The translations under genes were made by a program, and so were the position numbers. DNA of 63,741 nucleotides, counting the filler, from Octopus bimaculoides (lineage: Eukaryota): the NCBI RefSeq assembly GCF_001194135.2. It is 6 parts of 6 records of this genome, joined end to end, with 100 filler letters (N's around TTAATTAATTAA, not from the genome) between each part and the next. Parts side by side here need not be neighbours in the genome. Positions count along the whole stretch, not along the records: positions 41,920 to 62,288 come from NC_069006.1; 5 more parts are not named here. One strand, written 5' to 3'. This document shows, piece by piece, positions 41,819-62,949 of the stretch (its first letter is position 1; every line of letters begins with the position of its first letter). Below the pieces are notes generated by a model. The model did no database searches and was not told the DNA's origin. It saw nothing but the letters and a program-made list of their open reading frames with translations.

Positions 41819-42689
41819 CNNNNNNNNNNNNNNNNNNNNNNNNNNNNNNNNNNNNNNNNNNNNTTAATTAATTAANNNNNNNNNNNNNNNNNNNNNNNNN
41901 NNNNNNNNNNNNNNNNNNNCCACATAGTAACCAGATCTCCCTCATATATTTATAGTAAATACAATATTTGAAGTAAATTTAAATATCTTAATTTTCTCAT
42001 AAAAATTGTTGCTGCTTTGGTGGCCCAGTAGGTAAGGGTGTTTAAAAGTAGTAACAAGACACAAGCAGAGGTTTCTAATCCCTGCCAGGAATTACAGGGT
42101 GGTCTTATTAAACATTTTCATTTTTTATCTCTAGAGATAATTAAAAAAATGAAAAATTTTAGTAAGACCCCTTAGTGCAGGCCCTGGGTAGGATTGAACC
42201 TGCCCAGGATGTTCAATGTGGCTGTCTAATTATGTCTCTACCCACAAGACCACCAAGACACCCAACATTACTGTAGTAAATTAAGGGATATTTAAATCTA
42301 TCATAACTAAAGATAAAAAACAAAACTATCTCATCACAGCTGTAGCTCAGTAATTAATTCCAAATTGGGGACCTGCTTAGATGCCTTTGTAGGTAAGGAC
42401 ATTGATTAGTAAGTAGTGATTTAATATACAGGGAGAGGGTTTCAACCTGTAACTCTCTCAAGGAATTACAAGAGCAGTGGAGTACGGGGAGTAAATATTT
42501 TATTTTAAAAAAAATTTCAAATTTTTATGAACACCAAGGATAGTGCTCTTGAAAGGGATTGAACCTTGCTCAGGATGTGTAATACAGTGTATGCACTTAC
42601 CCATATGGCCACAAAGACAACAACACTGAAAGCAGGCAAAAAAGAAGCTATTTAAATTGATTTATATATCATATATTTTTTCTTTTACT

Positions 42690-43100
42690 ACCAAGGTCTG
42701 CTCCTGCGGTCAGATTTTATTACTAAATTGTTTCCAGTTCTATATTTAAGAGATGAGGAATTATTTACATTATTTACATTTGACAGACACCCATCCCCAT
42801 CCTGCTTGTTGCCAACACAATGCTCCGGCCGATACACCCTCCAGCCCCCATCAGGTGTCCTGGGGAAACCTCGAACCCGAGTTCCCATTCCTAAGGTATT
42901 CCTCGATATTATTATTGTTATTATTATTATTATTATTTAGGTCACTGCCTGGAATCGAACTCTGAATCTTTGTAAAAACTCGCATATGGCATAGTGGTTA
43001 AGAGCACGGGCTACTAACCCCAAGATTCCAAGTTCAATTCCAGGCAATGACCCGAATAATAATAACATTGAAAAACACCCCCGAAATGAGAACCCAGGCT
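42690..43100. mobile_element. tRNA-headed repeat with (AAT)n linker and hammerhead-like tail, as a head-to-head inverted pair
   Basis: Plus copy 42984-43100 has A-box TGGCATAGTGG and B-box GTTCAATTCC. Minus copy 42970-42690 starts at the same aagatt and carries a decayed hammerhead-like motif at 42815-42858. Confidence 0.65.
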
Positions 43101-45492
43101 CATATACACATTAATGTATTTTTGTATGTTTGTCATATGATTTAATAACACCAATTTCTCTATTCCAGGACCCTCTTCAATTAGATGACGCCTTCTTACT
43201 GGCTTCCAAAAACGGAGTCTGGGTGAAGTTTGAACGAAGATTAAAAAAATAACTTGAAATACTGCACTATTAAATCAGACTTTTGTGAAATTATGTACGA
43301 TTTAATCATAGATTGAAAAAGTAAAGTTATACAAAACAAAAATTGTTATTATAAAACTAGAAAATATGAAGATAATTTTTTAATAAATGCTTCCCTTTCA
43401 TCTAACCAACATCTTTTTCTATATATATTTTATTGGTCATTAAAAATAAATCTCATACAGATTTTCTCAGAGAGCTATAATTCTACAGTTAACATGTGAA
43501 TAAATTTGTATTTTTATTAGTTGTTCTTAACATTTCTGTTTCAAGTCTTTTACTATTTTCTTCTTGTCTTCCTTATATTTTCTACTTCAAACATCATTAT
43601 TTCTCATCTCTAACACACACTCTCCCTCTCTGTCTGTCTCTCTTTCCCAGAAAAACAAAAGAATAACAGAAAATACAAGAAGGCCTTCTTTATAGAAATC
43701 GTAGTAATGACACAAATATTACAAAGTTTTCAAATTTCTAATACCTTTCTTAAGTCTCAAATTGAAATATTCTTAAATGTCTCCACATGAATAATTACAT
43801 GTTAGCCAACTGGAAAGTGCAGCCTTTGAACCACATTTTTTTGGAAATTATCTTACTGTACAGGTCTTCTACTTTGATGTTTTCTTTTGTTTATATCATT
43901 TTTATTTCTTAATTTTTTTATTTTATCTACTTTTGCTATATTTTTCTTCTAAACACTTTCCCTATTCTTTTTCTTTTTATATTTGTGTATACATGGTCAA
44001 AATCATCTTTCTACAGACTATGAGCTTAAGTGCACAGTTTGGCTGCATATCCTCATATTGTTATTACTATTCAATATATTCTACCAAATGTGCTTCCTTT
44101 AATGTTTCTTCTTACAAAGCATAACCAAGGGAGAGAATCAGTGATTGTAACACATAAGCCATACATCTATTCTTCTCTGAAATAAAATTGATATCATTTC
44201 TGATTTTCTCATTGATCATGAAATTTCATTAAGTGGCTGTCTTCCATAGTTCATTTGCTATTCAAAGCATTCAAACTAGAAATAACAACATTCAGGTAAC
44301 AACAGGTCGTGTGAAGGGCTTGTTTCTTACAAGAATCCACCATTTGCATGTGTAAAGGTAATTGTATTACACTAGATATAAAGTAAATATTTCATTCTTT
44401 ATCTAAATTGAGCTTTTCAAATTGACTGCTGATGTATACAATACACTCGAGAAGGTGTGCACCTTTTGTGACAGACCATGCCTTCCTTTTGCTGGGCTCA
44501 AATCTCATTTGTGGACCCATGAAAAACAACCTCCACCAACTATTCTGTCTATATATGTGCACACCTTTCAATGCCGTGTGCGCCATAAGGTCTGAAAATC
44601 TCACAGAGGCCTCAAAAGACATTTTAAGATCCATAAATATCAGAACTTATCTGCAGCTCTTGGTGGTCCAAATCAGAGGTGCAATCTGTGTGGGTGTCTT
44701 TGCGAAACATTGTCTGGTTTAAAAAGCTACATCAGATGCCATGATGCTTCTAAGGTGTAGGTACAGGAGGGGGTCAGACTCTGCATAAGGAGTAGGCATT
44801 CACCATATATACATACATATTAGTTTCATTTTCCTAGTTTATCATTGTATATACACACACATGGAAGGCACACGGCTTAGTGGTTAGGGTATTTGGCTCA
44901 CAATCATAAGGTTGTGAGTTCAATTCCCGTCAACTGATTGTGTCCTTGAGCGAGACACTTTATTTCATATTGTTCCAGTCCATTCAGCTGGCAAAAATGA
45001 GTAGTACCTGTATTTCAAAAGACCTTCCTTGTCACACTCTGTGTTGCGCTGAAGCTTCCTGAAGACTATGTTAAGGGTACGTGTATCTGTGGAGTACTCA
45101 GCCACTTACATGTTAATTCCATGAGCAGACACATGTGGATGATGTTAGTTAATCAAATCCTACTTGAACGCATTTTCAGATTTTATTTTTATAAGTTTAC
45201 AAGTATTTCTGTTTTATATCTCTACAGAGTAACAATAACTACATCTAGCTGAATAGATTGTAACAAAGTGGTAGTAACCAGGTGAAGTTGATGTATTGTT
45301 AAAAGGAGATAATCTAAAAAATGCTTTCGGAATTACATTTTATTAATGAATCTTATTTTCTAATTCAAATTAATATTATTGAACTAATTTCAATATCTCA
45401 GCAATTTTTTTTCTTTTTTTTTTTTCATTTGAATTATAAAGTTTATAAAATGTAAATATTTTTTTTAAAATGTATTACATTACTTTTCAACA

Positions 45493-45618
45493 TGTAAATA
45501 CTAAACAGTATATATAAAGGACAAAATCCTTTTAAGAGCAGAAAATTTTGCTGGCAACCAGCCATTTTTCTGCTCTTAAAAGGACTTTGTCTTTTATATA
45601 TACTGTTCAGTATTTACA
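45493..45618. repeat. Near-perfect hairpin (~54-bp arms plus inner GCTGG-caa-CCAGC)
   Basis: Arms 45493-45546 and 45564-45618 differ by 3 substitutions and one indel. Confidence 0.93.
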
Positions 45619-45989
45619 AGTTAAAAAATATATCTTTCTACTTGTTCTACAATACATTTCAACGCTTCAAAAACAAACTTATGTTTGTTTACATATGACG
45701 TAATCTGTATTACAGTACGTCCGTTTCAAAATAACAACTTCTTGGAACCTCTTTGACATCAGAGTTCCTCCGATGCTGCTTTTAAATTCATGTGTGTTTT
45801 GATGATAAATTTCTACCCTGGTCAAGACTATTCCTTCACATTTCAGAAAATAAAAACTTATTCAGATACCATGGTTGATGATGCACAGATATGTGAACAG
45901 GTGTGGACTTCACTCACTAAGTCGACGTTTCCCAAATTCATACAATTTTGTGGACTGAAATCCTGGGTCTATCATAGATCTAAGTTGGG

Positions 45990-47019
45990 TACCTAATACA
46001 GTGAGTGCCAAAAGACTCTCGTACTTTTCTATCGTTTGGCCAATGCCAGCGGTGGTGGTTCAACTGCGTCATTCTATAGAGGGTCGGTAGAGTCAAAGTG
46101 TGACGATACCTTAGGGAAGACTATGAGCTTAAGAAAATGACCATCTCACCAGCCTATTCTGAAGAACATTCGGGCTGAGGTCCCTAGGTAATTTCCAGAA
46201 ATCCTTGTTCTGGCAGTGTTACCGAGGAGCCTTACCTGTTCGAGATAAGCTCACAAGGCATGGCTGACCCATGTGGAGGCGCAATGGCCCAGTGGTTAGG
46301 GCAGCGGACTCACGGTCATAGGATCGCGGTTTCGATTCCTAGACCGGGCGTTGTGAGTGTTTATTGAGCGAAAACACCTAAAGCTCCACTAGGCTCTGGC
46401 AGGGGATGATGGTGAACCCTGCTGTACTCTTCCACCACAACTTTCTCTCACTCTTACTTCCAGTTCCTGTTGTACCTGTAATTCAAAGGGTCAGCCTTGT
46501 CACACTGTGTCACGCTGAGTATCCCCAAGAACTATGTTAAGGGTACACGTGTCTGTGGAGTGCTCAGCCACTTGTATGTTAAGTTCACGAGCAGGCTGTT
46601 CCGTTGATCGGGTCAACTGGAACCCTCGACGTCGTAAACGACGGAGTGCCAACAAAAAATGGCTGACCCAGCTCACTGACTTGCCTAAGATGCGTACGGG
46701 ATAAGGAAACTGTCCTGCATGCAATTGTGCAATGTTTGGGTGTGTTGGATCTGTGGACTTATGTCGAACAACTGTTGTCAAGTATTGGAAGAGTACAGCT
46801 GTCCGCTGAGTCAATTGTAAAAACTGACACACTTGCCACCTTGAATAAAGAAGGTAAGATTTGTTTTCTCATAGAGGTTATATGGAAGATCAGAATGAAA
46901 GGATTTGTGACCGGCAACTTCATTTCTGGCCCTGTACTGGTGACATTTTTTCACTTTTCATCTGAAAAGGAAAATAGGGCTGGAAAGGAGATGCCTTTCG
47001 GCTGTTGCGTTCTGGAAAA
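45990..47019 (+). mobile_element. Tx1/L1-like LINE 3' region (zf-RVT), split by a SINE
   Basis: Removing the SINE restores KSLFWQCYRGALPVRDKLTRHG*PSSLTCLRCVRDKETVLHAIVQC...LWTYVEQLL, the C..C...ET..H....C motif. Confidence 0.8.
46272..46658 (+). mobile_element. SINE family Z, full length, 12-bp TSD
   Basis: TSD ATGGCTGACCCA at 46260-46271 and 46659-46670; A and B boxes present. Confidence 0.95.
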
Positions 47020-47799
47020 NNNNNNNNNNNNNNNNNNNNNNNNNNNNNNNNNNNNNNNNNNNNNNNNNNNNNNNNNNNNNNNNNNNNNNNNNNNNNNNNN
47101 NNNNNNNNNNNNNNNNNNNNNNNNNNNNNNNNNNNNNNNNNNNNNNNNNNNNNNNNNNNNNNNNNNNNNNNNNNNNNNNNNNNNNNNNNNNNNNNNNNNN
47201 NNNNNNNNNNNNNNNNNNNNNNNNNNNNNNNNNNNNNNNNNNNNNNNNNNNNNNNNNNNNNNNNNNNNNNNNNNNNNNNNNNNNNNNNNNNNNNNNNNNN
47301 NNNNNNNNNNNNNNNNNNNNNNNNNNNNNNNNNNNNNNNNNNNNNNNNNNNNNNNNNNNNNNNNNNNNNNNNNNNNNNNNNNNNNNNNNNNNNNNNNNNN
47401 NNNNNNNNNNNNNNNNNNNNNNNNNNNNNNNNNNNNNNNNNNNNNNNNNNNNNNNNNNNNNNNNNNNNNNNNNNNNNNNNNNNNNNNNNNNNNNNNNNNN
47501 NNNNNNNNNNNNNNNNNNNNNNNNNNNNNNNNNNNNNNNNNNNNNNNNNNNNNNNNNNNNNNNNNNNNNNNNNNNNNNNNNNNNNNNNNNNNNNNNNNNN
47601 NNNNNNNNNNNNNNNNNNNNNNNNNNNNNNNNNNNNNNNNNNNNNNNNNNNNNNNNNNNNNNNNNNNNNNNNNNNNNNNNNNNNNNNNNNNNNNNNNNNN
47701 NNNNNNNNNNNNNNNNNNNNNNNNNNNNNNNNNNNNNNNNNNNNNNNNNNNNNNNNNNNNNNNNNNNNNNNNNNNNNNNNNNNNNNNNNNNNNNNNNNN

Positions 47800-48132
47800 C
47801 TTATTCTTTGTAAGCCTAATACTTATTCTATCAGTCTCTTTTTGCTGAACCGCTAAGTGACGGGAACATAAACACACCAGCATCGGTTGTCAAGCAATGC
47901 TAGGGGGACAAACACAGACACACAAACATACACACACACATACATACATATATATATATACATATATACGACGGGCTTCTTTCAGTTTCTGTCTACCAAA
48001 TCCACTCACAAGGCTTTGGTCGGTCCAGGGCTATAGTAGAAGACACTTGCCCAAGGTGCCACCCAGTGGGACTGAACCCGGAACCATGTGGCTGGTAAGC
48101 AAGCTACTTACCACACAGCCACTCCTGCGCCT
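47800..48132 (-). mobile_element. SINE family Y
   Basis: Family body, with head ...accacacagccactcctgcgcc. Confidence 0.88.
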
Positions 48133-48574
48133 ATATATTTTTAATATATTGATTATTCTTTATATTTTTGATATGTTTGATGTATTGAATATACTTTTGG
48201 AGAAATCCATACATGTTGGGTGATAGGCTGAGTAAATATAAATGTAGATGTGAATTTTATTTGCTTAAATTTGATTCTTAATTTCTACATTATATTTTAG
48301 AGAAGAAATATATATACACAGAAATGATAAAATAAGCATTTGATGTCTAAAAACGTTAAAAAAATCAGATGGAATAGTCATGACAGGAACTCACTTTGTT
48401 CAATCATAATGGTGCTCACTCAGAGATGGCTGGGGTCTTAAAAACAACAACAACAACAAAAAACATATATTTAGTTTTTTTTCCAATTTAATCCAGAGAT
48501 TAAAGAGAATTACCAAAAAAAAAAGTTTATTTATGTTTAAAAAAAAGAAATTTTCAGTATATCAGACATTTGTC

Positions 48575-48755
48575 CCCTTTAGCATTCAAATTACTCTGTT
48601 CTAAATTAATTATGCATCATCACATAGCTTTGACAGTGACTGCATAGTTTCAGAATGGCATTATAGGGTAAGTGTGAGAGACAGGATCTGGCTGGTTTTA
48701 ATATAAAACAGGTAGAATATTCAGGTGAGATTAGGCTGATTTGAATGCTAAAGGG
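48575..48755. mobile_element. TTAA MITE family 1
   Basis: CCCTTTAGCA...TGCTAAAGGG followed by TTAA. Confidence 0.7.
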
Positions 48756-51107
48756 TTAATGGTGGAGAAGATGGTTGTTAACAAGATTACTGTGTTTAGG
48801 TTTGAGCTTTAGAAATAGCTTAAGTCAAACAAAAATAAGGCAAAAGCAGTGAAAAAGAAAAAAAAAGTTGAAATACAGGTTTTCACAAAATCTCAGCAAC
48901 ATACACAAAAAGTGCCAGAAGAAGTAAAGAAAAGCTGAATGTAATTCGAGTCCCAAAATCACCTGAAAAGATTAGAAAAAAAAAAACAAAATTAAATTAA
49001 CCTTTCAGCATTGAGATTATGGTGCTACTTTGTCATGTGATCCACAATTTAAAGGGAGATTACTTTAGGATACTTTTTAGCTTACTTTTCAATTTTTTAA
49101 ATCCCTTAAGATGTTAGCTAAAAAATTTTGCAATGAGATCAGCAACGAGATGAAGACAGTTACATTTTTAGTAAAAAAAAATGATCATTTGGATAATGAA
49201 GAAAATGTTGCACCATGTCATCGGTGGAGAAATGAAGGAAGCTTGAAGAGAAGGGAAAAATAGTGAAATTTTGTCAACTTTACATTGCAAAACTCGCAGC
49301 TGCCAAACTTGTGTGGTGTAGGAAATTATTATTTTAATTATTATATTGTTTATTCTTGATTTCTTATTATCATTTACTATGACATAAATGAAACAAGGTT
49401 TTATTATTAAAATAGAAAGAATTTAGAAAAAAATATATTTACAATAATTATATACAAAAGAATTAATAAAAACATTTAGAAACTGAAAAGTAAACTAAAA
49501 ATTAACCTAAAGTAATCTCCCTTTAAATTGTAGATCTCCTGCCAAAGTAGCACCCAGATTATTCAGTAAAATGTAATGCTTATTTATTCACAGTTTTGAA
49601 TTAATGATGTATTACTTTGTAGTTTGGAGATTTTAATGATGTGATTGTCTAGTTTTAGAATGACATTGTAGAGTATGCATAAGAGGCCAGATCTGGCTGG
49701 TTTGAACAGAAAACAAATAGAATATTTGGGCCTGATAAGGTTGGTTTGAATGGGCCGTGACTGCTGAGGACATGCGTAAGCTTGCAAGGAACGAAGCCAG
49801 TATGCTCCGCTGGATGTCTAATGTCAGTGTGCATACACAACAGAGTGTAAGCGCCTTGAGAGAATTAATCGAACAAAATTCAAAATTTTAAATCCATACC
49901 GCATTCCCAGCATTAACCGGTCTAATATAATTTTTCTCTTTTTATAACTAATTCCAATAGGGGAGGTAACTCCTTGCCATATTCTATGACTATTACAATT
50001 ATTACTGAAATTTCTAATATTAATTATTCAAAGCACATAAATTATATTATCCTAGGAGCCACTGCAAAGCCCACAATTACTATTGGCAAACCGTGCATTG
50101 ATATGCCTGCCTTAAAGTCCAATATTATACTACATAGTACTATAAAATATGAACCATAAATAAATTATAAATAATAAATAATGTTCTATTGCAATAGGAA
50201 TAATTATTTCTAGGAGTTTTTTCCAAAACCCACATGTGTTATATTTAAGTTATATATTAATACATTAATATTGCCTGCTTTAGGACCTAATATTATATTC
50301 TATGCACTCCATGTTATAAATTATAAACAATCCTCACCAGAATGGAGATCCATAGTGTGCCATCCTACCTCTAGGATTTTATTCAAAACTGACAATTGCT
50401 ATTGTCAAGTTATACACTTATATAGCCTGCTTTAAGGTCTAATAACACACTATATTGTACTACAAGTTATAATTAACTCTCCATTATAATTTAATCCATA
50501 CTAAATTGTGCCTAGATGTTAATGGCAAAATTCCAGCCACTACTTGTAACTTTAATATTTTAATATGGCCTGCCTTAATATCCAATATTATATATCATTA
50601 TTATTATTATTATTATTATTATTAATATTATACTACAACCAGATTCAATATAGTAAACCTTCTCTTATAAACTGCCCAAATTTTATGCCGAAATATAGAA
50701 TTGAGCTCCATTATTAAAGATCCTATTATTAGTAGATAATCTGGAGAGTCTAAATGAAATATTTTAAACTAAATTATCAATAATACGCCTAAATTGTTAC
50801 TACAATGTACTACAGGTTATAGTCAATTCTCTATTATAATTGAACTCAATCCTCAAATGTCACTAAAATTCTAGTAAAGCCCACAACTGCTATTGGTACA
50901 TTATATACTAATGTGGCCTACTTAAAGACCTAAACTTAATTCATTATGTGTTTTTTGGGGGTTTTTTTGTTCTAAAGAAAGTTATTCCTGATGAAGTGTA
51001 TGGCAACNNNNNNNNNNNNNNNNNNNNNNNNNNNNNNNNNNNNNNNNNNNNNNNNNNNNNNNNNNNNNNNNNNNNNNNNNNNNNNNNNNNNNNNNNNNNN
51101 NNNNNNN

Positions 51108-51340
51108 CACAAACAATCTATTTCTCTATACAGTACAATGATCTCTCTGACTCACAAGCAATCTATTTCTCTATACAGTACAATGATCTCTCTGATTCAC
51201 AAACAATCTATTTCCCTATACAGTACAATGATCTCTCTGACTCACAAACAATCTATTTCCCTATAGAGTACAATGATCTCTCTGACTCACAAACAATCTA
51301 TTTCCCTATACAGTACAATGATCTCTCTGACTCACAAACA
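51108..51340. repeat. 45-bp minisatellite, 5 copies plus a partial copy (left end in gap)
   Basis: Unit cacaaacaatctattt(c/t)..tatacagtacaatgatctctctgact, nearly identical copies. Confidence 0.97.
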
Positions 51341-54300
51341 TGCGCTACATTCCATCTCAAATATCTAATCATCATCATTATTATCATCCTCATTTAACGT
51401 TCATGTTCCTATGTCGGTATGGGTTAGATACATACATATGTATCAGAGGCAATGTGTCTGAAACTTTTGGTGATATACTATAACTGAGGAGACCCATCAA
51501 GCAAGGTGAAATCGTAGTCATGGCCAATGTTGGTGTCATGTAACTGACACCCATGGCAGGTCGCACGTAAAAAGCACCTTTCAAGTGTTGGGCCTCATGG
51601 AGGCAAAGAGACAGATGTGCCAGTGGCATGTGTGAAGCTCTTTTCGAGTGTTGGGCTTCATGAAGGCAATGACGAATGATTGAGACCTTTGACATTATGT
51701 CGTGCTTGAGAAGATTCATCGAGCCAAGTAAAATCACTGTCATCGCAGATACTGGCGTCATGCCAATGGCACCCGTGCCAGTGGCACATACAAGCACTCA
51801 TTATACTCTTGGAGTGGTTGACGTTAGGAAGGGCATCCAGCCGTAGAAAACCACGCCAAATCAGACTGGAGTCTGGTGCAGCCTTCCAGCTTACCAGCCC
51901 TGGTCAAACCATCCAACCCATGCCAGCATGGACAACAGACATTAAATGGTGATGATGATGATATACATATATATATATGCATATCATCATCATCATCATT
52001 TAACTGGTGTCAAGTTGTATTGGCACCTTTGCCTTTCCCTTGGATAACATCGGTGGCGTGGAGAGGGGACACCGGTATACATGGATGACTGCTGGTCTTC
52101 CATAAACAACCCTGCCTGGACTTGTGCCTTGGAGGGGAACATCTAGGTGCAATCCCATGGTCATTCATGACCAAAGCAGATCTTTACCTCTTTCCCTTTA
52201 TCATAGCTTCTTTGTTCAGCTCAATTAAGGGGTTTTATTTTACAGGTACTTGGCAAACCTCACCTGCGCTGGTGCCATGTAAAAAGCACCCTATACACAG
52301 TTTAGTGGTTGGCATTAGGAAGGGCATCCAGCTGTAAAAACCATACCAAAGTAGACAGTTAGATTGCCAAGTAACCTTCAAGGCAAGAAAATAAGGGAAG
52401 AGGAAGAAATTAAAAAGGGGAAAATTATAAGGGAGAGAAAGGAAAAAGAAAGGAGTAAAGTCACCTCAGCTAAACAGAGGGGGGTAGTATTGAAGAGGAG
52501 GAGGGGCAATTGTGATGGTGCTAAGCCAGGCAATGAGAGGCTAGATTGTAAAGGAAGAACAAGCCCAGATGTTTTTTAATAGAAATACAAGACTACTCTG
52601 TATTATATAAGGGAGGGTGAGAATGAGCTTATTAAGTTGATAGGGACATTTAGATAATGCAAGCCTTCGTTGAAAATATCCAAATGAAAAAATAGTCAAA
52701 ACAGCCACGTTTGGAATGTCTGTGATCTGGAGCCTGACAGATCAAAGTTACAACTTTTTTTATGTGAACTATGTTCATTCATCCTTTTTCTTTTTTTTCT
52801 TTCTTTCTTTCTTCATCTTTGGTTTGCAGGAAGGACCCATGCAACTATGCCCCTGGCCTTCACAGCCCCTATACTATCAACTGTAGATAAACATAGTCTT
52901 CCCTTTCTCTAAGTTTCCATTGTGGTTCTGTCAATAATGGTAATTACATTCTATGGTGGTATGATTTCTCTTCCCAAACTCTAAACCAGTGGTATATAAC
53001 AATTTTTTGTAACTTCCAATTTTAAGTAGTTGTTATGCCTAACGCCCACCTAAGTGGTGAGTGGGGTATCATGAATAAACAAACTTTAAATGGATGATAA
53101 TTTATAAATTTTACTCTCAAAATGGATTGTATAATCTTTTAATATTGAAATGATAAGAAATACAGAGAAGGGCTTTCACCAAATAAAATTACCCCAGGAC
53201 TTATTTCTTAAGCCTAGTAATTATTCTATTGGTCCCTATTGCCAAATCTCTGATTACAGGGATGCAAGCACACCAACATCAGTTGTCCAACGATGATGGG
53301 GCGACAAACACAGACACATTAACAAAGCCTTTGAAATTCTATTTGTAAGTTGTCATTATCATTTGTATATACATAAGTATGATAACGCATGTACAAAAGT
53401 ATGTATGAAATTATACATACGTACGTACGTGCGTGCATACATACATACATACATACATACATATTACACACATCAAATACACTCAAAAGGCTTTGTTTCA
53501 GCCCAGGGCTAGAGTAGAAGACACTAATTCATCTTGACACACAGTGGGACTGAACCCAGAACTAAGTGGTTAGGAAACAAACATTATTATCATGTCGCCA
53601 TGCCTTGGCTATATGATAACAATGATGATGATTATGACAATGAAGATAACGACGACAATAACAAAAGTGATGACAGTAAGAGGATTTCAAACACTAACAC
53701 TCTTTTTCTGTACCTTTCTTCACATATTTTTATATATATATATATGACAGGCTTCTTTTAGTTTCTGTCCATCAAACACACTCAAAGGATCTTGTTTCAG
53801 CCCAGGGCTAGAGTAGAAGACAGTCATCCACTTTGTCACACAGTGAGACTGAACCCAGGACCAAGTGGTTAGGAAGGAAGTTTCTTAACCGCACAGTTAC
53901 ACAATTGCCAGTTGAGAGACCCCCTTCGGTCATGACTGACCATGGGATTGCACTTAGAAAGTTCCCCTCTGAGGCATAAGTCCAGACAAGGTTGTTTATG
54001 GAAGACCAGCAGTCGCCCATGCATACCAGCCTCCCTTCTCCATACCACCGATGTTATCCAAGGGAAAGGCAAAGGGGCCGATACACAATTGCTAGTAATA
54101 ATAACAATAATAATGATTACCCTGTCTAACACAATTTTTGCCCTTGGGTAGCAACTGTTGTTTCCTATTTGCTTTCCCCTAGAAAGTATGAAAAATGGTT
54201 AATATTTCCTTCAAACTTTGCTTGTGTTACAATATTTATTCAAAGCCCAAAGAATCCCTTTCAACCATATGGCTACTACACAAATCTTGCTCATGATCAG

Positions 54301-54583
54301 AGACACACATGCTCAAGCGGTTATGGTCAAGCAACTGACAAGCAAATCTGTGGTATTGAGCAGATTATTTGCTATAACGATATTTCTGCTTCAGCAACTC
54401 CATGGTGAATCTGTCAGAAATGTAATGGAAAACAGATCAGTTTCAAAATACTGTTGTCCAAGTTGTGATCTCCTTTGATTTCTAGATAGGAGCAAATAGG
54501 AAATAACACTTACTGATCATAGACCAAAAAAGTAAAAATTTTGTTACACAAAACTGATGACATTAAGACAATTAAAAACAATG

Positions 54584-54707
54584 TTACTTACAAGAATCGA
54601 CATCTTTCTTCATATCTGTCCACCTTGTCTCAAGAGTTTTTCCTGTTGCTTCTGGACAGTATTTCAGATTTTCAGTTACACATTTCTTATCTGATCCATA
54701 TATTTTC
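54584..54707 (-). CDS. Probable terminal exon of an uncharacterised six-cysteine protein
   Basis: ttgtttttcag acceptor, phase 2 start: KIYGSDKKCVTENLKYCPEATGKTLETRWTDMKKDVDSCK*. AATAAA on the minus strand at 54235-54240. A GTAAGT at 54591-54586 could instead be a donor. Confidence 0.72.
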
Positions 54708-56670
54708 CTGAAAAACAAGTAAATAAACATGAGATCCATAAAGTTTGCAATATTATATTGGAGATGCATAGGGAATAAAAAGAAGAAGAAAAAAAAACAT
54801 GTAAAAAGTTTAACATTCATATTCCAATATCTCAAATGAAATGCTTTACTAATGTGGCTGGTCCCAACTGAGCAACACCTTGGGCTAGTGTCTTCTAGTA
54901 TTGCTTTGAGCCAGCCTTGTCAGTGGATTTAGTAGACAGAAACTGAAAGAAGCTTATCACCATCATCATTTAACATCTGTTTTACATGCTGGCATGAGTT
55001 GGATAGCTTGACAAGATTTGGCCACCTGACTAAGAACTAAGCTGATTAAGAACTAACTGTTCTTAAGCTGTTCAGGCTCCATGTCTGTTTTTGCATGGTT
55101 CCTATGGCTGCTGCTGCTGGTGTGATGGTGGCAGTGGTGGTGCCGGTGGCAGTGGTGGTGCCGGTGGCAGTGGTGGCAGTTGCAATGGTGGTGGTAGTGG
55201 TGGTCACTGAATTTAGTTTTGTTTTTATTGTTTTATTTTAGTTTCTATTTGTCAACATAACAAGGTTGATATATTGAGGCAAAATATAGAATTAGAAAGG
55301 AGAATTGCAATCATTAGAATTCCACTACAAAATATTTTAGTTCAATGCTTTCCAGATTCTGCTACCACAAATCCACCCCACCAACCAGTCCACAGTGAGG
55401 GTACCATGATAAAACCCTAACCCTAGTAAACTCTGACCCTCTGCCCCAATCTTCTGCTACTTAATTTCCTCCACCTTTTTTTTTAATCCTTTTTTGTTAC
55501 CTTGATCAGGTAGTTATGGGGTCTTTTTTTCTTGATAATTTGATCTTTTATACATTTTGGGGTTTTTCTTTTTCATTTTTTTCTTCTTTCGATATTAAAT
55601 TAGATAAAAAGAAAAACTGTAAAATGGTTTGGCAAATGAGTAGAAAAGAAATGTAGGGCCAATAGAACCCAGCCTTTCTGATCTCAGTGCTTATGATAAA
55701 ATGGCCCCAACATGTTCCATATAATACTTGCTGAAAGGAAGGGCATCCAGCAGTAAACAACAACATGAAAGTGAACAAACAATACATAATCCTCCAACCT
55801 ATTTCAGGGGACCGTAACCAGCGCTAGATTAACCATTCAGCAAAATAAGCACATGCTTAGGGCTTCAAGAGATGGAGGCACCACAGAAATGGTAAATGGT
55901 TTATGGCACAAAAGAAATCACTTTAAATTTGCTAAATTAATATTCGTAATGCCTTATCTCAACTAAGTATAGAAGCAGAAGTTTTACGTAAAATTAATTT
56001 TAACGAGATCATCAAAAACTTTGCAATTAAATTTTTAAAAAAAACAAAAGAGAAAATTTTTCAAATATAAATAAAGTGGAGGTATACAAAAATAAACATT
56101 ATTTTCCATCTTTTTGTTAGTTTTGTTTCATTTTGGAAAGTAAAAATACATTTTAGATTTTGAACCATTTACATATACTTGAGGGCACCAACACTTTTTA
56201 AGTGCTTAGGGCCTCTATGGGTTTTAATCCAACTTTGACTGTACCAATGATTAAGAACTTGGACAGTGATGACAATGCCAAGCCATGCTTTCACATCTGC
56301 TCGCTATGCCAACGTTGAAAGTAAACATAATATAAGGATGAGGATGTAAATGATGACGATGATGAATAAGTGCAAAAATTAAGTTAAAAATTTAGCATTT
56401 AAACTGTCCATATCATGTTTTATGTTCAAACCAGCCAGATCCAGAATATCACACCTACCCTACAATGAAATTCTAAAAATACACAATCACATCATCAAAA
56501 TCTTGAAACTACAAGCTAATGATTATTTCAAAACAATGTGAATAAATAAGCATAACTTTTGACAGAATGACCTCCCATAATTCTATTAACTGGAATTTTT
56601 TTATGAAACTTTGATTTCTAGCATAAAACAGCCTTAGAAACACACTGGAATGATCAAAATAACATTTTAA

Positions 56671-56890
56671 CCCTTTGGTGTTTAAACCGGCTGTATCCGG
56701 CCCAAATATTCAACACATTTTATGCTCAAACTGGCCAGAGCCAGCTTCTCACACCTACCCTGCAATGTCATTCTAAAAATAAGCAATTACATCTTTCCTA
56801 TCTTGAAGCTACAAAATAATATCAGATAAATTTTTTGAAATGTGAATAAATAAGGATTACTTTTGACAAATTAATCTGAACACTAAAGGG
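56671..56890. mobile_element. TTAA MITE family 1
   Basis: TTAA-CCCTTTGGTG...CACTAAAGGG-TTAA. Partial copies at about 56390-56560 and 57065-57265. Confidence 0.8.
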
Positions 56891-57907
56891 TTAAATAGAA
56901 ATAAGCGAGATATTGGGTGAAAAATTTGCAAACCTCATTTGAATATCAGAGAAATATACCTAGTAGATATAGCAAAAAGGTTAGATATGTGTAAATATTG
57001 ACAGATAATTACGAAATTTGTAATTTTTAAGTGATCTCATATGAGATCACTGATAGGTAATGGGTTAAACCAGACATATCCAGCTCAAATATTCTGCTTG
57101 TTTTATGTCCAAATTGACCAGATCTGGCCTTTTACACCCACCCTGTAATGCCATTCTAAAAATAAACAATCATATCATCAATATCTCCAAGCTACAAGAT
57201 AATGCCGGATTTATTCAAAACCATCTGAACAAATAAGTATTACATTTCGACAGAATAATCTGACCATCAACGCCATCTATGTTTCATGCTGGAATGGGTT
57301 AGATAATTTGGCAGGATTTCATAGGTCCAAGGACTGTATCATTCTTCGTTGCCTACTTTGGCATACTTTTTACAGCAGGATGCCCTTCTTGGTGCCCTTC
57401 TCAACCACTTCATAGTATGTATTAGGTACTTCTTTTTTCCATGGTGCCAGCACTAGTGGGCACTATACAGCTTGCAAGGCTATGAACCCAGAGGGCAAGA
57501 ATTAAGCTGAGGATGGGAAAAGGGTTCTGGGCTCAGTCCCACTGCATGACACCTTAGGCAAGTGTCTTCTACTATAACCTTGAGTCAATCAAAGCTTTGC
57601 GAGTGGATTTGATAGATGGAAACTGAAAGAGGCCTGTCGTATGTGTCCCACCACCGTTTGACAACCAGTGTGGTGTGTTAACGTCCCCATATCTTAGCTT
57701 TTTGGCAAAAGGGGCCAATAGAATAAGTATCAGCCTTAAAAGAATAAGTACAGGGGTTCATTCATTCGACTAAAAATTCTTCAAGGTGGTGCCCCAGCAT
57801 GGCCACAGTCTAATGACTGAACCAAGTAAAAGATACAAGAAGAAACACTTGCAGAAGACCATATTAATCTTGTCTGTATCATTCCAATTTGTAGTAGGAA
57901 AGCAAGT

Positions 57908-58295
57908 TGTTGTTGTTGGCACTCCGTCGCTTACGACATCGAGGGTTCCACTTGATCCGATCAACAGAACATCCTGCTCGTGAAATTAACGTGAAAGTGG
58001 CTGAGCACTCCACAGACACGTGTACCCTTAACGTAGTTCTCGGGGATATTCAGCGTGATACAGTGTTACAAGGCTGACCCTTTGCATTACAGGCACAACA
58101 GAAACAGGAAGTAAGAGTGAGAGAAAGTTGTGGTGAAAGAGTACAGCAGAGTTCGCCACCATCCCCTGCCGGAGCCTCGTGGAGCTTTAGGTGTTTTCGC
58201 TCAATAAACACTCACAACGCCCAGTCTGGGAATCGAAACCGTGATTCTATGACCGCGAGTCCGCTGCCCTAACCACTGGGCCGTTGCGCCTCAAC
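57908..58295 (-). mobile_element. SINE family Z, full length, 12-bp TSD
   Basis: TSD AGGAAAGCAAGT at 57896-57907 and 58296-58307. Confidence 0.93.
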
Positions 58296-58361
58296 AGGAA
58301 AGCAAGTAAATGTTTAATAAAATGAAGAAGAAAAAAAAACAAACAGAAGAGAATAACTTAC

Positions 58362-58473
58362 AATTTACATTCTGTATGACCCTTTTCAGCTTTAAGACGG
58401 TCGGAACGATATTTGTCATATCTAAATTGGATTTTACTTATGCATTCTTTGCCCCTGTTACATTTTCTATGAT
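58362..58473 (-). CDS. Internal exon of the six-cysteine protein gene
   Basis: ttctccttttcttacag acceptor, TT|gtaagt donor, 112 nt, phase 1/2: HRKCNRGKECISKIQFRYDKYRSDRLKAEKGHTECK(L). Joins in frame to 54707. Confidence 0.75.
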
Positions 58474-59459
58474 CTGTAAGAAAAGGAGAACAAAATGTTT
58501 TTTCTTAAAAATGAACAGAATATGTTGCTGTTGGCGATGGCGTTGACTATCCCGTCAGCAAGGTGTGGATGGTTTAACATGAACAGATGATGTAGAGGAA
58601 TGAGTCAAGTCCAAATGTCTGCTTTTACAGGATCTCTACAGCTGGATGCTCTACCTAATGCCAACCACTTCACTGAATATAAGAAGTACTCTTTTTACAT
58701 CAGCACTTGATAAGCTCACCATTTGTTGTTGTTGTTGTTGGCACTCCGTCGCTTACGACGTCGAGGGTTCCAGTTGATCCGATCAACGGAACAGCCTGCT
58801 CGTGAAATTAACGTGCAAGTGACTGAGCACTCCACAGACTCATTAGATAGCTAGTTAGTTATGTACTGATGCAAGTCATAATAACAAACTTTTATTGGTG
58901 GTAATATGATGTAATGGTCATGTTGCCCGAATACATATAATTGTTAGTTTCCCATTGGTTAAAATTACTGCCAATATTTGAATTCTAAACATTCGTCAAA
59001 GAGAAATCTTTCAGGAAACACGGTTCTTAGAATCCAGGTATGAGCAGTTATAAAAACACTGATTTTTAGGAAATTAATCAGTGATCGTTGGTTGCCACTT
59101 GACTCCACAACACCTCACTCTCAGTGTCCGCTTTTTGTCAGTTGACCCCACAACACTCACAGTCAGTGTTCATTGGTTGTCATTCATTTCCACGACACTC
59201 TTTTGAGATATTGGCTATTTCTATGCCATGTCTATTAATTCACCAAGACTATTTTGAATTGTTGTGTAACACTAGTTTCTTAGTATGGAAGAATTAGTAA
59301 TATAAATTTTATGTCGTAACTCTCTACAATAATCTTCTTTGACTTATAAATATACTGTAAATATTAAATGTATATAAATAAACTAATTTAGTAAATACTT
59401 TCTCTTTTTTCATTTTCTTCAACCTGTTAATGAGATTTATTTCTGTAACTATGAAAATA

Positions 59460-59775
59460 ACTAACTTGCTAGATAGCTAGTTAGCTAAATAACTAACTCA
59501 CTATAGATAGCTAGCTAGTTAATAGCTAGCTCACTAGTTAGTTAACAAGCTAGCTAGCTAGTTAGTTAACAAGCCAGCTAGCTAGTTAACAAGCCAGCTA
59601 GCTAGTTAACTAACTAGCTAGCTAGCAAACTAATTAGCTAGATAGATAGTTAACAAACTCGCTAACTATCTAACAAGCTAGTTAACTAGCTAACTAACTA
59701 AGTAGCTATCTAGCTAACAAGCTAGTAAACGAACTAGTTAACTAACCAACCAGCCAACCAACTAGGTAGGTAGAT
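59460..59775. repeat. Low-complexity (TAGC/TAAC/TAGT)n satellite-like tract
   Basis: Directly visible; a similar short stretch lies at about 58843-58862. Confidence 0.9.
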
Positions 59776-60065
59776 AGATTTTTATGTGAGTGTGTCTTTA
59801 TGCCTGTCTTTGCCCCTCACCACCACCCATCACCACTGGACAACTGGTGTTGGTGTTCTTAGATCTCCATAACTTAGCGGTTCAGCAAAAGACATTCATA
59901 CAATAAGTACTAGCCTTAAAAATAAGTCTTGGGGCTGATTTATTTGGCCAAAGAAACCTTTGTAGGTGGTGCTCCAGCACGGTCACAAACAAATGACTGA
60001 AACCAGTAAAAGAATAAAATAATTTTTCTGGAAGTTATGAGGCAACAAATTCAGAGGGGACTCAC

Positions 60066-60131
60066 GATGCAGAGGCAGACCCCAAAATTTCACGGGTTTT
60101 AAGAAGGTACAACATAATTCCCAGCGCTATT
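60066..60131 (-). other. Candidate 5' exon (66 nt) of the minus-strand gene
   Basis: ttctctctatacctgtag acceptor and ATC|gtgagt donor. Longest open frame is IALGIMLYLLKTREILGSASA, but its phase does not fit the canonical acceptor at 58473. Confidence 0.4.
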
Positions 60132-60609
60132 CTACAGGTATAGAGAGAATATTTTTGAGAACGTGTAGATAATGTATATCCCTACTATCCAGTCCTTTTA
60201 ATCCCCTGTTAATTTATTTCAAAAACTGCCTTCAAATTTTAATGGTTGGAACAGCAGGGATTCTGATGAAACAAAACAGCAAAAAAGAAAACGTAGAAAA
60301 ATACACTCTCTCTCACATACATTTTCATTAGGTCACCCTGACACAACAGAATATTGGCTACCAGAGCACATGAATAAGTGTCTATTTGCAGAAGTCATCT
60401 TATGTAACAAACTAGGCCATAACCTATCTTAAATGTCAGCTGGTGTACCATAAAAAATAAATAAAACAAAGGCGCCAGCGTGTAGCTGTGTGGTAAGAAG
60501 TTTGCTTCCCAACAAAGGCACCTTAGGCAAGTGTCTTCTACTATAGCCCTGAGCTAACTAAAGCTTCGTTAGTGGATTGGTAGATGGAGATGAAAGGCCG
60601 CCATGTAAC

Positions 60610-60750
60610 ACACACACACTCCCGGCCGACAGCGCTTTCGATCGCAAACTCACGGGTACGGTACCGGCCGCGTGGCTCGTATCGCAGCCGACACGTCGGC
60701 CTTTCCATCACAAGATCCGATTCTTGCGTCATAACTTCCGGTAAAATGGA
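60610..60750. promoter_or_regulatory. CpG-rich promoter-like island with ETS motif
   Basis: Sharp local CpG enrichment, CCGGAAGT (minus) at 60734-60741, several palindromes, strong minus donor CCC|gtgagt at 60654/60653. Confidence 0.55.
60654..60732 (-). CDS. Candidate first exon of the minus-strand gene (coding status uncertain)
   Basis: ATG at 60732 gives MTQESDLVMERPTCRLRYEPRGRYRT with a phase 1 gtgagt donor, compatible with the phase 1 acceptor at 58473. No signal peptide. Confidence 0.4.
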
Positions 60751-61604
60751 TACATATATATATATATATNNNNNNNNNNNNNNNNNNNNNNNNNNNNNNN
60801 NNNNNNNNNNNNNNNNNNNNNNNNNNNNNNNNNNNNNNNNNNNNNNNNNNNNNNNNNNNNNNNNNNNNNNNNNNNNNNNNNNNNNNNNNNNNNNNNNNNN
60901 NNNNNNNNNNNNNNNNNNTTTTTGCGAAATGCATTAAAAAAATACGAAGATTACAATTCTGAAAAAATTAGATTTAAATTTTTTGTTTATTTTCCCCATA
61001 TTCTTAATCACCGTATTTTCCCACGTAGATTGATAGAAATTGTAGCATATTAGGAGGTAACGAAAAAAAAAAATTTCCAATGATTCCGGGATGGGGGGGG
61101 TCTTGTCCCCCGCCTTTCCGAACCAAAATAAGGGATTTGCAGTATATTAGGAGGTCAGGGTACTTGATTCCACGCAAAAAATCCGAGTTTTTTTTGTTTC
61201 TTAGTGAAAATCGTGCGGGTGTTAATACAGAAATTTACCGAAATTAACTCTTTGTGGATGTTAACCATACATAGTATCGAATTTCTGTTGCGCTTGCCAG
61301 GAAAAGAGAAAGATAAAAACATGACAGAAAAACAGATTAGTAATTAGATTGTAATGTAGAGATACGTAGATGTAACGTAAATGGATACGCCTTGTTGGCA
61401 TTAAAAGCCTAACAGCGATATTTAGACGAACCCAAATTTGTTGAAGCGCATATTCAAAAGAAAGTGAAAGTCAAAAATATAATTCACATATGGGAGGCTC
61501 AACTTCGCTTATAGGACCCAGGAGTAATTTTTTCGAGGCCATTTTTTTTTTACAAAAAAGGCGCATCTAACAAATATGGTGTGTATGTATATTTGTGTGT
61601 GTGT

Positions 61605-61810
61605 GTGTGTGTTATTTCTTTACTACCCACAAGGGGCTACACACAGAGGGGACAAACAAGGACAGACAAACGGATTAACTGGTACTTATTTAATCGACCC
61701 CGAAAGGATGAAAGGCAAAGTCGACCTCGGCGGAATTTGAACTCAGAACGTAGCGGGCAGACGAAATACCGCTAAGCATTTCGCCCGGTGTGCTAACGGT
61801 TCTGCCAGTG
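61605..61810 (-). mobile_element. SINE family X, well preserved
   Basis: gaccccgaaaggatgaaaggcaaagtcgacctcggcggaatttgaactcagaacg...gctaacggttctgccag. Confidence 0.9.
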
Positions 61811-62949
61811 TGTGTGTGTGTGTGTGTGTACATACCTTTTATTAAAGCTGCAAATTTATCGCAGAACTGTTACTCGTAGTTTAACATTCCTGTTCCTCGG
61901 ACAGATAAATAACTGAATCAAAATCGTAATTGTACATATGATGTTATGACAGTTCTGTGATAGTTTTGCAGCTTTAGCAAAAAATATGTGACTCTACCCT
62001 CAGTATTCGAGTACTGCTTTGCGCCTATGTGCTTACCTGTGCTTATATTCGTTCTTTATTCGTGTATAATTATCCGGAAATCTTTTGTCATACATCTGTG
62101 GCCTTATCAGACTGGACTAAACGGAGCAGGTGCTCAGACGAGGACGGAAAGTGTCGCTGAAGAGGCCACTGGTGTGTGACGAAGATTTCCGGACAATGGA
62201 CACGAGTTAGAATAAGAAGAGTAATGAACAAGTGAAGAACGAATATATAGTGGGTGTGTTTATTTGGTAAAAAAAAAAAAAAAAAAAANNNNNNNNNNNN
62301 NNNNNNNNNNNNNNNNNNNNNNNNNNNNNNNNTTAATTAATTAANNNNNNNNNNNNNNNNNNNNNNNNNNNNNNNNNNNNNNNNNNNNCAGAATAATTGA
62401 TAGTCAGATGTGGGAATGTCCGGCAAATATGGTGTGTGAGACGTTGTTTCCTATTCAGTCTGGTCTAGCCTTTGGAATGTCTTCCTCGCTGTATGCGGCC
62501 GAGTAGTATACTGAAGGTTGAACGCCTTTCGTTTTGATTAGAAAGATGTTCGTTTTTCTTTTAGAGCTGACGTAAGCCACTCAAGCTGCTCGCAATAGAT
62601 AGTCTTCGTGATTGTTTGGCTTGAGTTTAAATGTTCAAAGTGGACTAGACAAATCATATTCCACCAAACAAATAGAAACTCCTTAAATGGGGGAAGTTCG
62701 TCCTTAGCCTGAGGATTAAATGTTTAGAATTATATTGTCAATAAAAGAAAATAAAAAAACTAATCCTACTTACAGAAACGCTAAACTGGGAAGGTTTTGA
62801 AAAGATCCAACTTCTAATTCATTGATATTATTATCCATCAAATTTCTGTAACAAAAAAAAAGTGAGCCGTGAAAAGCTGTACAGAGGTTCGTAATGAAAT
62901 CGAAAATATAATGCCTAAAAATTTAGGAAAGTATACGGTGACGATGACA

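Follow-up and report, generated by a model that had tools for sequence, protein, structure and literature searches.

LOC106873900 of Octopus bimaculoides, a four-exon gene that probably encodes a membrane-anchored six-cysteine surface protein

We analysed a stretch of 63,741 nucleotides of DNA from Octopus bimaculoides (RefSeq assembly GCF_001194135.2; hereafter the window), in which positions 41920..62288 come from NC_069006.1. This piece is identical (100%, gaps included) to GCA_001194135.2 chromosome CM046626.1:3021920-3058336. Two minus-strand exons located in it had been described in an earlier note, made from the sequence alone, as a hidden gene for a short cationic six-cysteine domain. 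They are coding exons 2 and 3 of the four-exon, single-copy gene LOC106873900. The product of this gene is likely an octopod-restricted surface protein with three helices and three disulfides, probably held at the membrane by a glycosylphosphatidylinositol (GPI) anchor. The four-exon structure by itself is, in our judgement, highly probable; the coding sequence (CDS) extends over 16.4 kb of CM046626.1. Nothing is newly discovered at the gene level, given that LOC106873900 is already present in RefSeq and UniProt.

The peptide joined from the two exons matches, over its full length and with 100% identity, residues 25-101 of UniProt A0A0L8GZ38 / XP_014776917.1 (101 aa). These entries are named 'uncharacterized protein LOC106873900', no function being given in the databases, and have an additional N-terminal signal peptide, MKVLLIISSLFLCYVAVTSVNNA. 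The current RefSeq product of LOC106873900 is XP_052832927.1 (125 aa), which supersedes the 101-aa model and falls into the same 90% cluster as the 101-aa models. It consists of the signal peptide and the translations of exons 2, 3 and 4, residue for residue as reconstructed by us. The gene is annotated under all these accessions and so was not hidden. On the other point the note was right: the 58362/54707 junction is present in both public protein models, and a real spliced minus-strand gene had been found from raw sequence with the correct frame and junction. What it lacked was both ends. Its peptide corresponds to residues 25-99 of both models followed by a read-through CK; it is without exon 1 (the signal peptide), which lies outside the piece, and without exon 4 (the tail), and it ends in K-stop like the 101-aa models. 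The range 58474..60732, which had been included in the gene, holds only intron 1, and a tblastn search found no signal-peptide exon in the piece. In an exact look-up, the 101-aa model was on record on no contig.

Direct reading of the sequence reproduced the exons, splice sites, phases, translation, cysteine spacing and charge count as they had been described. Exon 2 lies between the acceptor cttacag/AT and the donor TT/gtaagtt (the slash marks the exon boundary). Its start is in phase 1, its last 2 nt belong to a split codon, and it encodes (D)HRKCNRGKECISKIQFRYDKYRSDRLKAEKGHTECK(L), which contains Cys1-3 and is identical to residues 24-61 of the 101-aa and 125-aa models. Exon 3 follows the acceptor tttttcag/GA and encodes (L)KIYGSDKKCVTENLKYCPEATGKTLETRWTDMKKDVDS, with Cys4-5, plus the first base, T, of the Cys6 codon. 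Joined in these phases, the two exons give HRKCNRGKECISKIQFRYDKYRSDRLKAEKGHTECKLKIYGSDKKCVTENLKYCPEATGKTLETRWTDMKKDVDS, after which the genomic sequence continues as TGT AAG TAA (read-through CK and stop). Exon 1 was read on L002, the sequence onto which the window was mapped and in the coordinates of which this exon is listed in Table 1; the phase of its donor (phase 1) matches the phase-1 start of exon 2. The mechanical list of open reading frames (ORFs) has only the entry 54584..54835, in which the second exon is buried, and no entry for the first one, again as remarked earlier. Independently of the RefSeq model, exon 4 was found by scanning every AG acceptor downstream of 54592 for a phase-1 open frame with a hydrophobic stretch. 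The candidate at 48962 comes after a long polypyrimidine tract and reads (T)GT GAT TTT GGG..., that is, C-DFGTRITFSFSLLLLALFVYVAEIL-stop: its first bases, GT, complete Cys6, and the remainder is a hydrophobic C-terminal tail.

An exhaustive phmmer search of 1.84 billion representative proteins yielded one relative, GAB1609545.1 from Argonauta hians (133 aa; E 6.6e-4, 31% identity). When the mature peptide or the Argonauta protein was used as the query of a word-indexed search for homologues, each matched only itself. The Argonauta loci Ahia01_001240300 and Ahia01_000660000 (GAB1609545.1 and GAB1603787.1, 133 aa) thus represent the only detectable homologue, and, judging by these searches, the protein is apparently restricted to octopods. 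The identity to LOC106873900 is only 31-33%, whereas the architecture is shared: the Argonauta proteins have a signal peptide, a near-identical Cys spacing (5/25/8/7/21 vs 5/24/10/7/21 in Octopus), a hydrophobic tail end and a conserved FG. Conserved between the two species are all six Cys, a Trp, a number of charged positions, the tail and the positions of all three introns. The conservation of cysteines, proposed earlier as a check, holds for all six of them in the only known relative. The Argonauta gene has four exons with introns in phases 1, 2 and 1 at positions matching those in Octopus, the same phases at exon 2, and a Cys6 codon split as T/GT. After the sixth Cys its protein continues as GPLNFGIQIMPSLTTIVLALVAYIF, and exactly 25 residues follow the last Cys in both species. 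When the Argonauta tail was compared with the six frames of the 20-kb piece, the top score (40) was obtained at exon 4; the next one was 32 (mean 15.7, standard deviation 3.5). By Cys pattern, intron positions and phases, signal peptide and the 25-residue tail, LOC106873900 and Ahia01_001240300 belong to one orthologue group.

Unlike the single-copy Octopus gene, the Argonauta gene exists twice, on different contigs, the local DNA identity of the copies being 87-99%. The two CDSs differ at 4 of 402 positions: two differences are synonymous and fall into the mature domain, where no amino acid is changed, one changes an amino acid of the signal peptide and one an amino acid of the tail. The 400-nt intron flanks differ by ~3.9%, from which ~16 differences in the CDS would be expected. 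The exons are therefore under conservation, and the comparison of the copies indicates purifying selection on the Argonauta coding sequence. For the Octopus-Argonauta pair dN/dS is not usable, because synonymous sites are saturated at 31% identity.

Some further observations concern the Argonauta contigs. The copies lie on BAAFZT010000085.1 (L001) and BAAFZT010000035.1 (L003) and are colinear through introns and flanks; of the 133 residues of their proteins, 2 differ. The copies represent either haplotigs (uncollapsed haplotypes) or the result of a recent (segmental) duplication. A major-facilitator sugar-transporter gene flanks the copy on L003. On L001, a partial duplicate of the start of exon 2 (SDEDKCGRAKNC) occupies positions 22322-22357, ~220 nt upstream of the real exon 2, and may represent a local duplication, a decoy or an alternative acceptor.

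The 125-aa precursor consists of an N-terminal signal peptide (exon 1), a six-Cys domain of ~77 aa and a 25-residue C-terminal hydrophobic segment (exon 4). The only hydrophobic segments in both species are the N-terminal signal and the C-terminal stretch, which reaches the very last residue. The predicted signal peptides, MKVLLIISSLFLCYVAVTSVNNA in Octopus and MKSGLVILSCTLVLFCCYECALVGAS in Argonauta, are each the sole N-terminal hydrophobic segment, and the presence of a signal in the full model agrees with the extracellular location assumed in the earlier note. The tails end in FSLLLLALFVYVAEIL in Octopus (mean Kyte-Doolittle hydropathy 2.46) and in MPSLTTIVLALVAYIF in Argonauta (2.0); no basic residues and no cytoplasmic tail follow. 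Because of the 25-residue hydrophobic tail after Cys6, the product is most likely membrane-anchored rather than a free small cationic toxin, antimicrobial or signalling peptide, as had been suggested.

A classical GPI-attachment signal has small residues at the omega and omega+2 positions, a spacer and a hydrophobic end. By inspection, the tails of both species appear to fit this layout: [D/N]-F-G is conserved at the putative omega site (D101-F-G in Octopus, N112-F-G in Argonauta) and is followed by ~6 mixed spacer residues and then by 13-16 hydrophobic residues, the F at omega+1 being atypical. Of a GPI anchor, a transmembrane anchor and secretion, we favour the first with fair confidence. 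The same gene structure might instead yield a type I protein in which the C-terminal segment stays in the membrane as a permanent anchor and practically no cytoplasmic tail exists, given that the hydrophobic stretch of 16-20 residues is long enough for a bilayer and is drawn as a helix by AlphaFold2. However, no basic stop-transfer or cytoplasmic residues occur past the stretch in either species, and small residues are kept at the putative omega and omega+2 positions ~9 residues before the hydrophobic core, a layout typical of a GPI proprotein. We therefore regard a permanent transmembrane anchor as unlikely.

The second question about the C-terminus is whether the tail belongs to the product at all, since the sixth Cys had been placed one residue before a stop. 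This stop (54586..54584) lies within a donor consensus: exon 3 ends in GAT TCT T/GTAAGTAA, which, used as a donor, leaves T in phase 1. Both XP_052832927.1 and the Argonauta homologue splice at this donor (T/gtaagt at 54592/54591) to a fourth exon, so that intron 3 splits the Cys6 codon and the 25-residue hydrophobic tail follows. The note had named, as a result that would refute it, reads that use the gtaagt at 54591 and place the exons inside a longer known protein. This refutation applies in part: the donor is used, but what it joins is a short tail exon, without making the exons part of any long known protein. The DSCK-stop ending of the two-exon peptide and of the 101-aa models is read-through into intron 3, and, by sequence comparison, the conserved product is the 125-aa protein.

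According to the original proposal, the main or an alternative product would be a soluble secreted cationic six-Cys peptide of 77 aa ending in DSCK-stop, arising from retention of intron 3 or from polyadenylation in it and acting as a free toxin, antimicrobial or signalling peptide. This ending is found in both of the earlier public models (101 aa), A0A0L8GZ38 and XP_014776917.1, and read-through still yields a Cys codon and stops one residue later. Yet RefSeq has swapped the 101-aa model for the 125-aa one at the same LOC, and the stop is a mere by-product of the donor consensus. In Argonauta, read-through of the donor continues as LLHFLYCLYLHF, stop-free in the stretch translated, and therefore the K-stop ending is not conserved, whereas the tail exon has kept its position, phase, length and sequence. 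An AATAAA hexamer, reported ~345 nt downstream, does lie 344 nt past the TAA; but this strand has by chance one AATAAA or ATTAAA in every ~407 nt, and with hexamers so frequent the poly(A) argument has no weight. Downstream of exon 4, ATTAAA starts at 48702 (183 nt past the stop) and AATAAA at 48531 (354 nt past the stop). As for the charge, the count of 21 K/R against 12 D/E was exact and the Octopus domain is strongly basic (pI 9.4, net charge ~+6 to +9). The description of the domain as short and cationic thus suits Octopus, but a strong charge is not conserved, the Argonauta protein being much less basic (~+2.5), and for this reason positive charge is probably not the key functional feature. 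Taken together, these data make the soluble peptide a rather unlikely product; a minor read-through isoform might exist beside the 125-aa protein.

The Cys spacing, C-x5-C-x24-C-x10-C-x7-C-x21-C, was confirmed by count. AlphaFold2 models of both proteins, computed from shallow alignments (2-3 sequences), have a three-helix core with core pLDDT of ~75-90, which agrees with the helical character expected earlier. In the Argonauta model the helices cover residues 33-59, 65-85 and 90-108 (core pLDDT ~77-90); in the Octopus model helix 1 ends at residue 51 and is followed by helices 65-75 and 80-100+; here the pLDDT is ~73-84 across the helical blocks and ~55 in the loop 51-60. The ectodomain is thus predicted to be an up-down-up three-helix bundle. 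The helix positions, on which the pairing is based, suggest a disulfide ladder C1-C5, C2-C4, C3-C6.

The earlier note could not assign a family, and none emerged from Pfam, from the Protein Data Bank (PDB) sequence search or from Foldseek against PDB. None of three queries (the 77-aa peptide, the Argonauta protein and the 125-aa protein) could be placed in a family when compared with Pfam-A by hmmscan at E up to 10; DUF19, saposin, UPAR_LY6, GDNF/GAS1 and PBP_GOBP were absent from the matches. The matches to PRO8NT, DUF4321 and DUF4736 were far under their cut-offs and were discarded as noise. In PDB (all chains), phmmer with a single sequence and with a profile gave no match under E 0.1, and Foldseek with the two AlphaFold2 models returned only generic helical bundles (best E 2.4 and 0.55).

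Several known families resemble the protein in part. DUF19 (PF01579), to which a loose likeness had been proposed, is also a Cys-rich extracellular invertebrate domain of helical character. DUF19 domains are ~130 aa long with ~12 Cys, and no match to this family was found for any of the three queries; the proposed likeness is not supported. Saposin-like proteins (SapB; NK-lysin, granulysin, amoebapores) are similar in having ~80 aa, helical structure and three disulfides, some members being cationic. The typical saposin Cys spacing is ~2/27/10/24/5, which 5/24/10/7/21 does not fit; moreover, the LOC106873900 protein has three predicted helices instead of four or five and a putative C-terminal membrane-anchor signal, SapB_1/SapB_2 had no Pfam or PDB sequence match, and no saposin occurred in the Foldseek lists. 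The GDNF-receptor / GAS1 domain (PF02351) has ten Cys against six here and likewise had no Pfam match. Closest in design are the GPI-anchored Ly6/uPAR proteins (CD59, Lynx1, Sleepless), which have a signal peptide, one disulfide-rich ectodomain of ~70-80 aa and a GPI signal beginning a few residues past the last Cys. Ly6/uPAR domains are beta-rich three-finger folds with 8-10 Cys, whereas the LOC106873900 domain is predicted to be all-helical with six Cys and has no UPAR_LY6 match; it is not a member of this class. By analogy, it probably acts as these proteins do, as a membrane-tethered binding or modulator module.

The protein could still belong, though very divergent, to a known helical Cys-rich family (saposin-like, DUF19, GDNF-receptor/GAS1 or insect OBP-like) and share its function. 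Its size, six Cys and helical content are broadly those of saposin-like proteins, and GFRalpha and GAS1 are helical, Cys-rich and GPI-anchored. Against this stand the empty Pfam result for all three query versions, the PDB sequence searches with none under E 0.1, the Foldseek search with none under E 0.5 for both models, and the disagreement with the saposin spacing; we consider such a membership unlikely. That there is no real gene but a chance pair of open frames with splice-like edges has a negligible probability: the general abundance of AG/GT dinucleotides in AT-rich DNA is all that speaks for it, while independent public gene models exist, the Argonauta homologue keeps six Cys, three intron positions with their phases and the tail, and the two Argonauta copies differ less in their exons than in their introns.

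A number of points weigh against a GPI-anchored, octopod-restricted three-helix protein as the product of LOC106873900. By sequence alone, the Argonauta match reaches only E 6.6e-4. No synteny and no shared neighbours were seen within +/-10 kb, the parts common to Octopus and Argonauta in tblastx being repeats only. What supports the 54592 to 48962 junction is the RefSeq model together with conservation, and no reads. The GPI assignment follows a rule of thumb only; besides the atypical Phe at omega+1, the Octopus tail has a Glu three residues from the end. The AlphaFold2 models have a mean pLDDT of 69, given alignments of 2-3 sequences, and the disulfide pairing is a guess. In the literature searched there are no expression or functional data: the accessions and the LOC number give no papers, and a general query (octopus, GPI-anchored, cysteine-rich) returned nothing relevant.

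With these reservations, GPI anchoring, the disulfide pairing and a binding role are what we infer for the LOC106873900 protein. The precursor would enter the endoplasmic reticulum, lose the signal peptide and the C-terminal propeptide, and become attached to a GPI anchor through D101 (N112 in Argonauta). A disulfide-stapled three-helix module would then be displayed on the outer leaflet of the plasma membrane, close to the membrane, and might there bind other molecules while tethered, for example in the role of an accessory subunit, a co-receptor or a recognition tag. It could also be shed by a phospholipase. Our confidence in any specific role is low. The correction of the model changes what biology is to be expected: a surface protein that is probably lipid-anchored takes the place of a diffusible cationic toxin or antimicrobial. 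The protein belongs to no Pfam family, no structure of a relative has been solved, and its single detectable homologue comes from another octopod.

A more far-reaching reading, possible but on balance doubtful, is that LOC106873900 and its Argonauta counterpart found an octopod-restricted, fast-evolving GPI-anchored family with a previously undescribed three-helix, three-disulfide ectodomain, acting as a lineage-specific recognition or receptor-modulating module. If so, the recognition role might be played, for example, on gamete, neuronal or chemotactile cell surfaces, and a soluble form might arise by cleavage of the anchor or by intron-3 read-through. As it stands, LOC106873900 is one of many uncharacterised lineage-restricted cephalopod genes, and it would become interesting only if expression or binding data tied it to a cephalopod-specific trait.

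The features of the gene are listed in Table 1 in the order of transcription.

Table 1. Features of LOC106873900 (positions in the window unless L002 is indicated)
Feature	Position	Strand	Remarks
Coding exon 1 (ATG...MKVLLIISSLFLCYVAVTSVNNA + G)	L002 10001..10070, ~2.9-3.0 kb beyond 62288	-	donor G/gtaaat; strand given as in the window
Intron 1, 3' part	58474..62288 (to piece edge)	-	includes gap 60770..60918
Coding exon 2 ('first exon' of the earlier note)	58362..58473	-	112 nt; sequence and splice sites read directly
Intron 2	54708..58361	-	3,654 nt
Coding exon 3 ('second exon' of the earlier note minus its last 8 nt)	54592..54707	-	116 nt; read directly
5' end of intron 3, GTAAGTAA	54584..54591	-	read through gives C K stop, the ending of the earlier note's peptide and of the 101-aa models
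Intron 3	48963..54591	-	5,629 nt; includes assembly gap 51008..51107
Coding exon 4	48883..48962	-	80 nt including TGA stop 48885..48883; acceptor ttttttttttttctaatcttttcag
Candidate polyadenylation signals, 3' UTR (untranslated region)	48531..48707	-	weak; hexamers ~1 per 407 nt

Runs of N inside the genuine piece (47020-47799, 51008-51107 and 60770-60918) are assembly gaps. As all three are present also in GCA_001194135.2, the sequence is incomplete in intron 1, in intron 3 and in the 3' flank. On the plus strand, a cytochrome P450 gene next to LOC106873900 has its last coding exon at positions 43115-43252, ending in ASKNGVWVKFERRLKK and a stop. The public call for this gene (L002 32048-36417, on the strand opposite to LOC106873900) has a 458-aa product with the Pfam p450 domain; the two genes are convergent, and their stop codons are ~5.6 kb apart.

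A 387-bp interspersed repeat with a tRNA-like head (GGCGCAACGGCCCAGTGGTTAGGGCAGCGGACTCGCGG...) occurs at 57910-58296 (intron 2) and at 46272-46658 in inverted copies with 91.5% identity; one copy begins only 66 nt past the exon-2 donor, and there are weaker fragments at 45001-45128. In all probability this repeat is a short interspersed element (SINE) derived from a tRNA; scans of the piece for tRNAs (ARAGORN) and with Rfam were empty. In intron 3, a 45-bp tandem repeat at 51108-51340 (5.2 copies, 96% matches) abuts the 100-N gap 51008-51107, and the true array may be longer than the sequenced one. A degenerate microsatellite block of ~290 bp, of the (GCTA)n / TAGCTAGCTAGTTAAC type, occupies positions 59455-59746 in intron 1. 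Self-BLAST also revealed several copies of another repeat of ~150-200 bp, 73-80% identical to each other, at 56416-57266 (intron 2) and 49555-49750.

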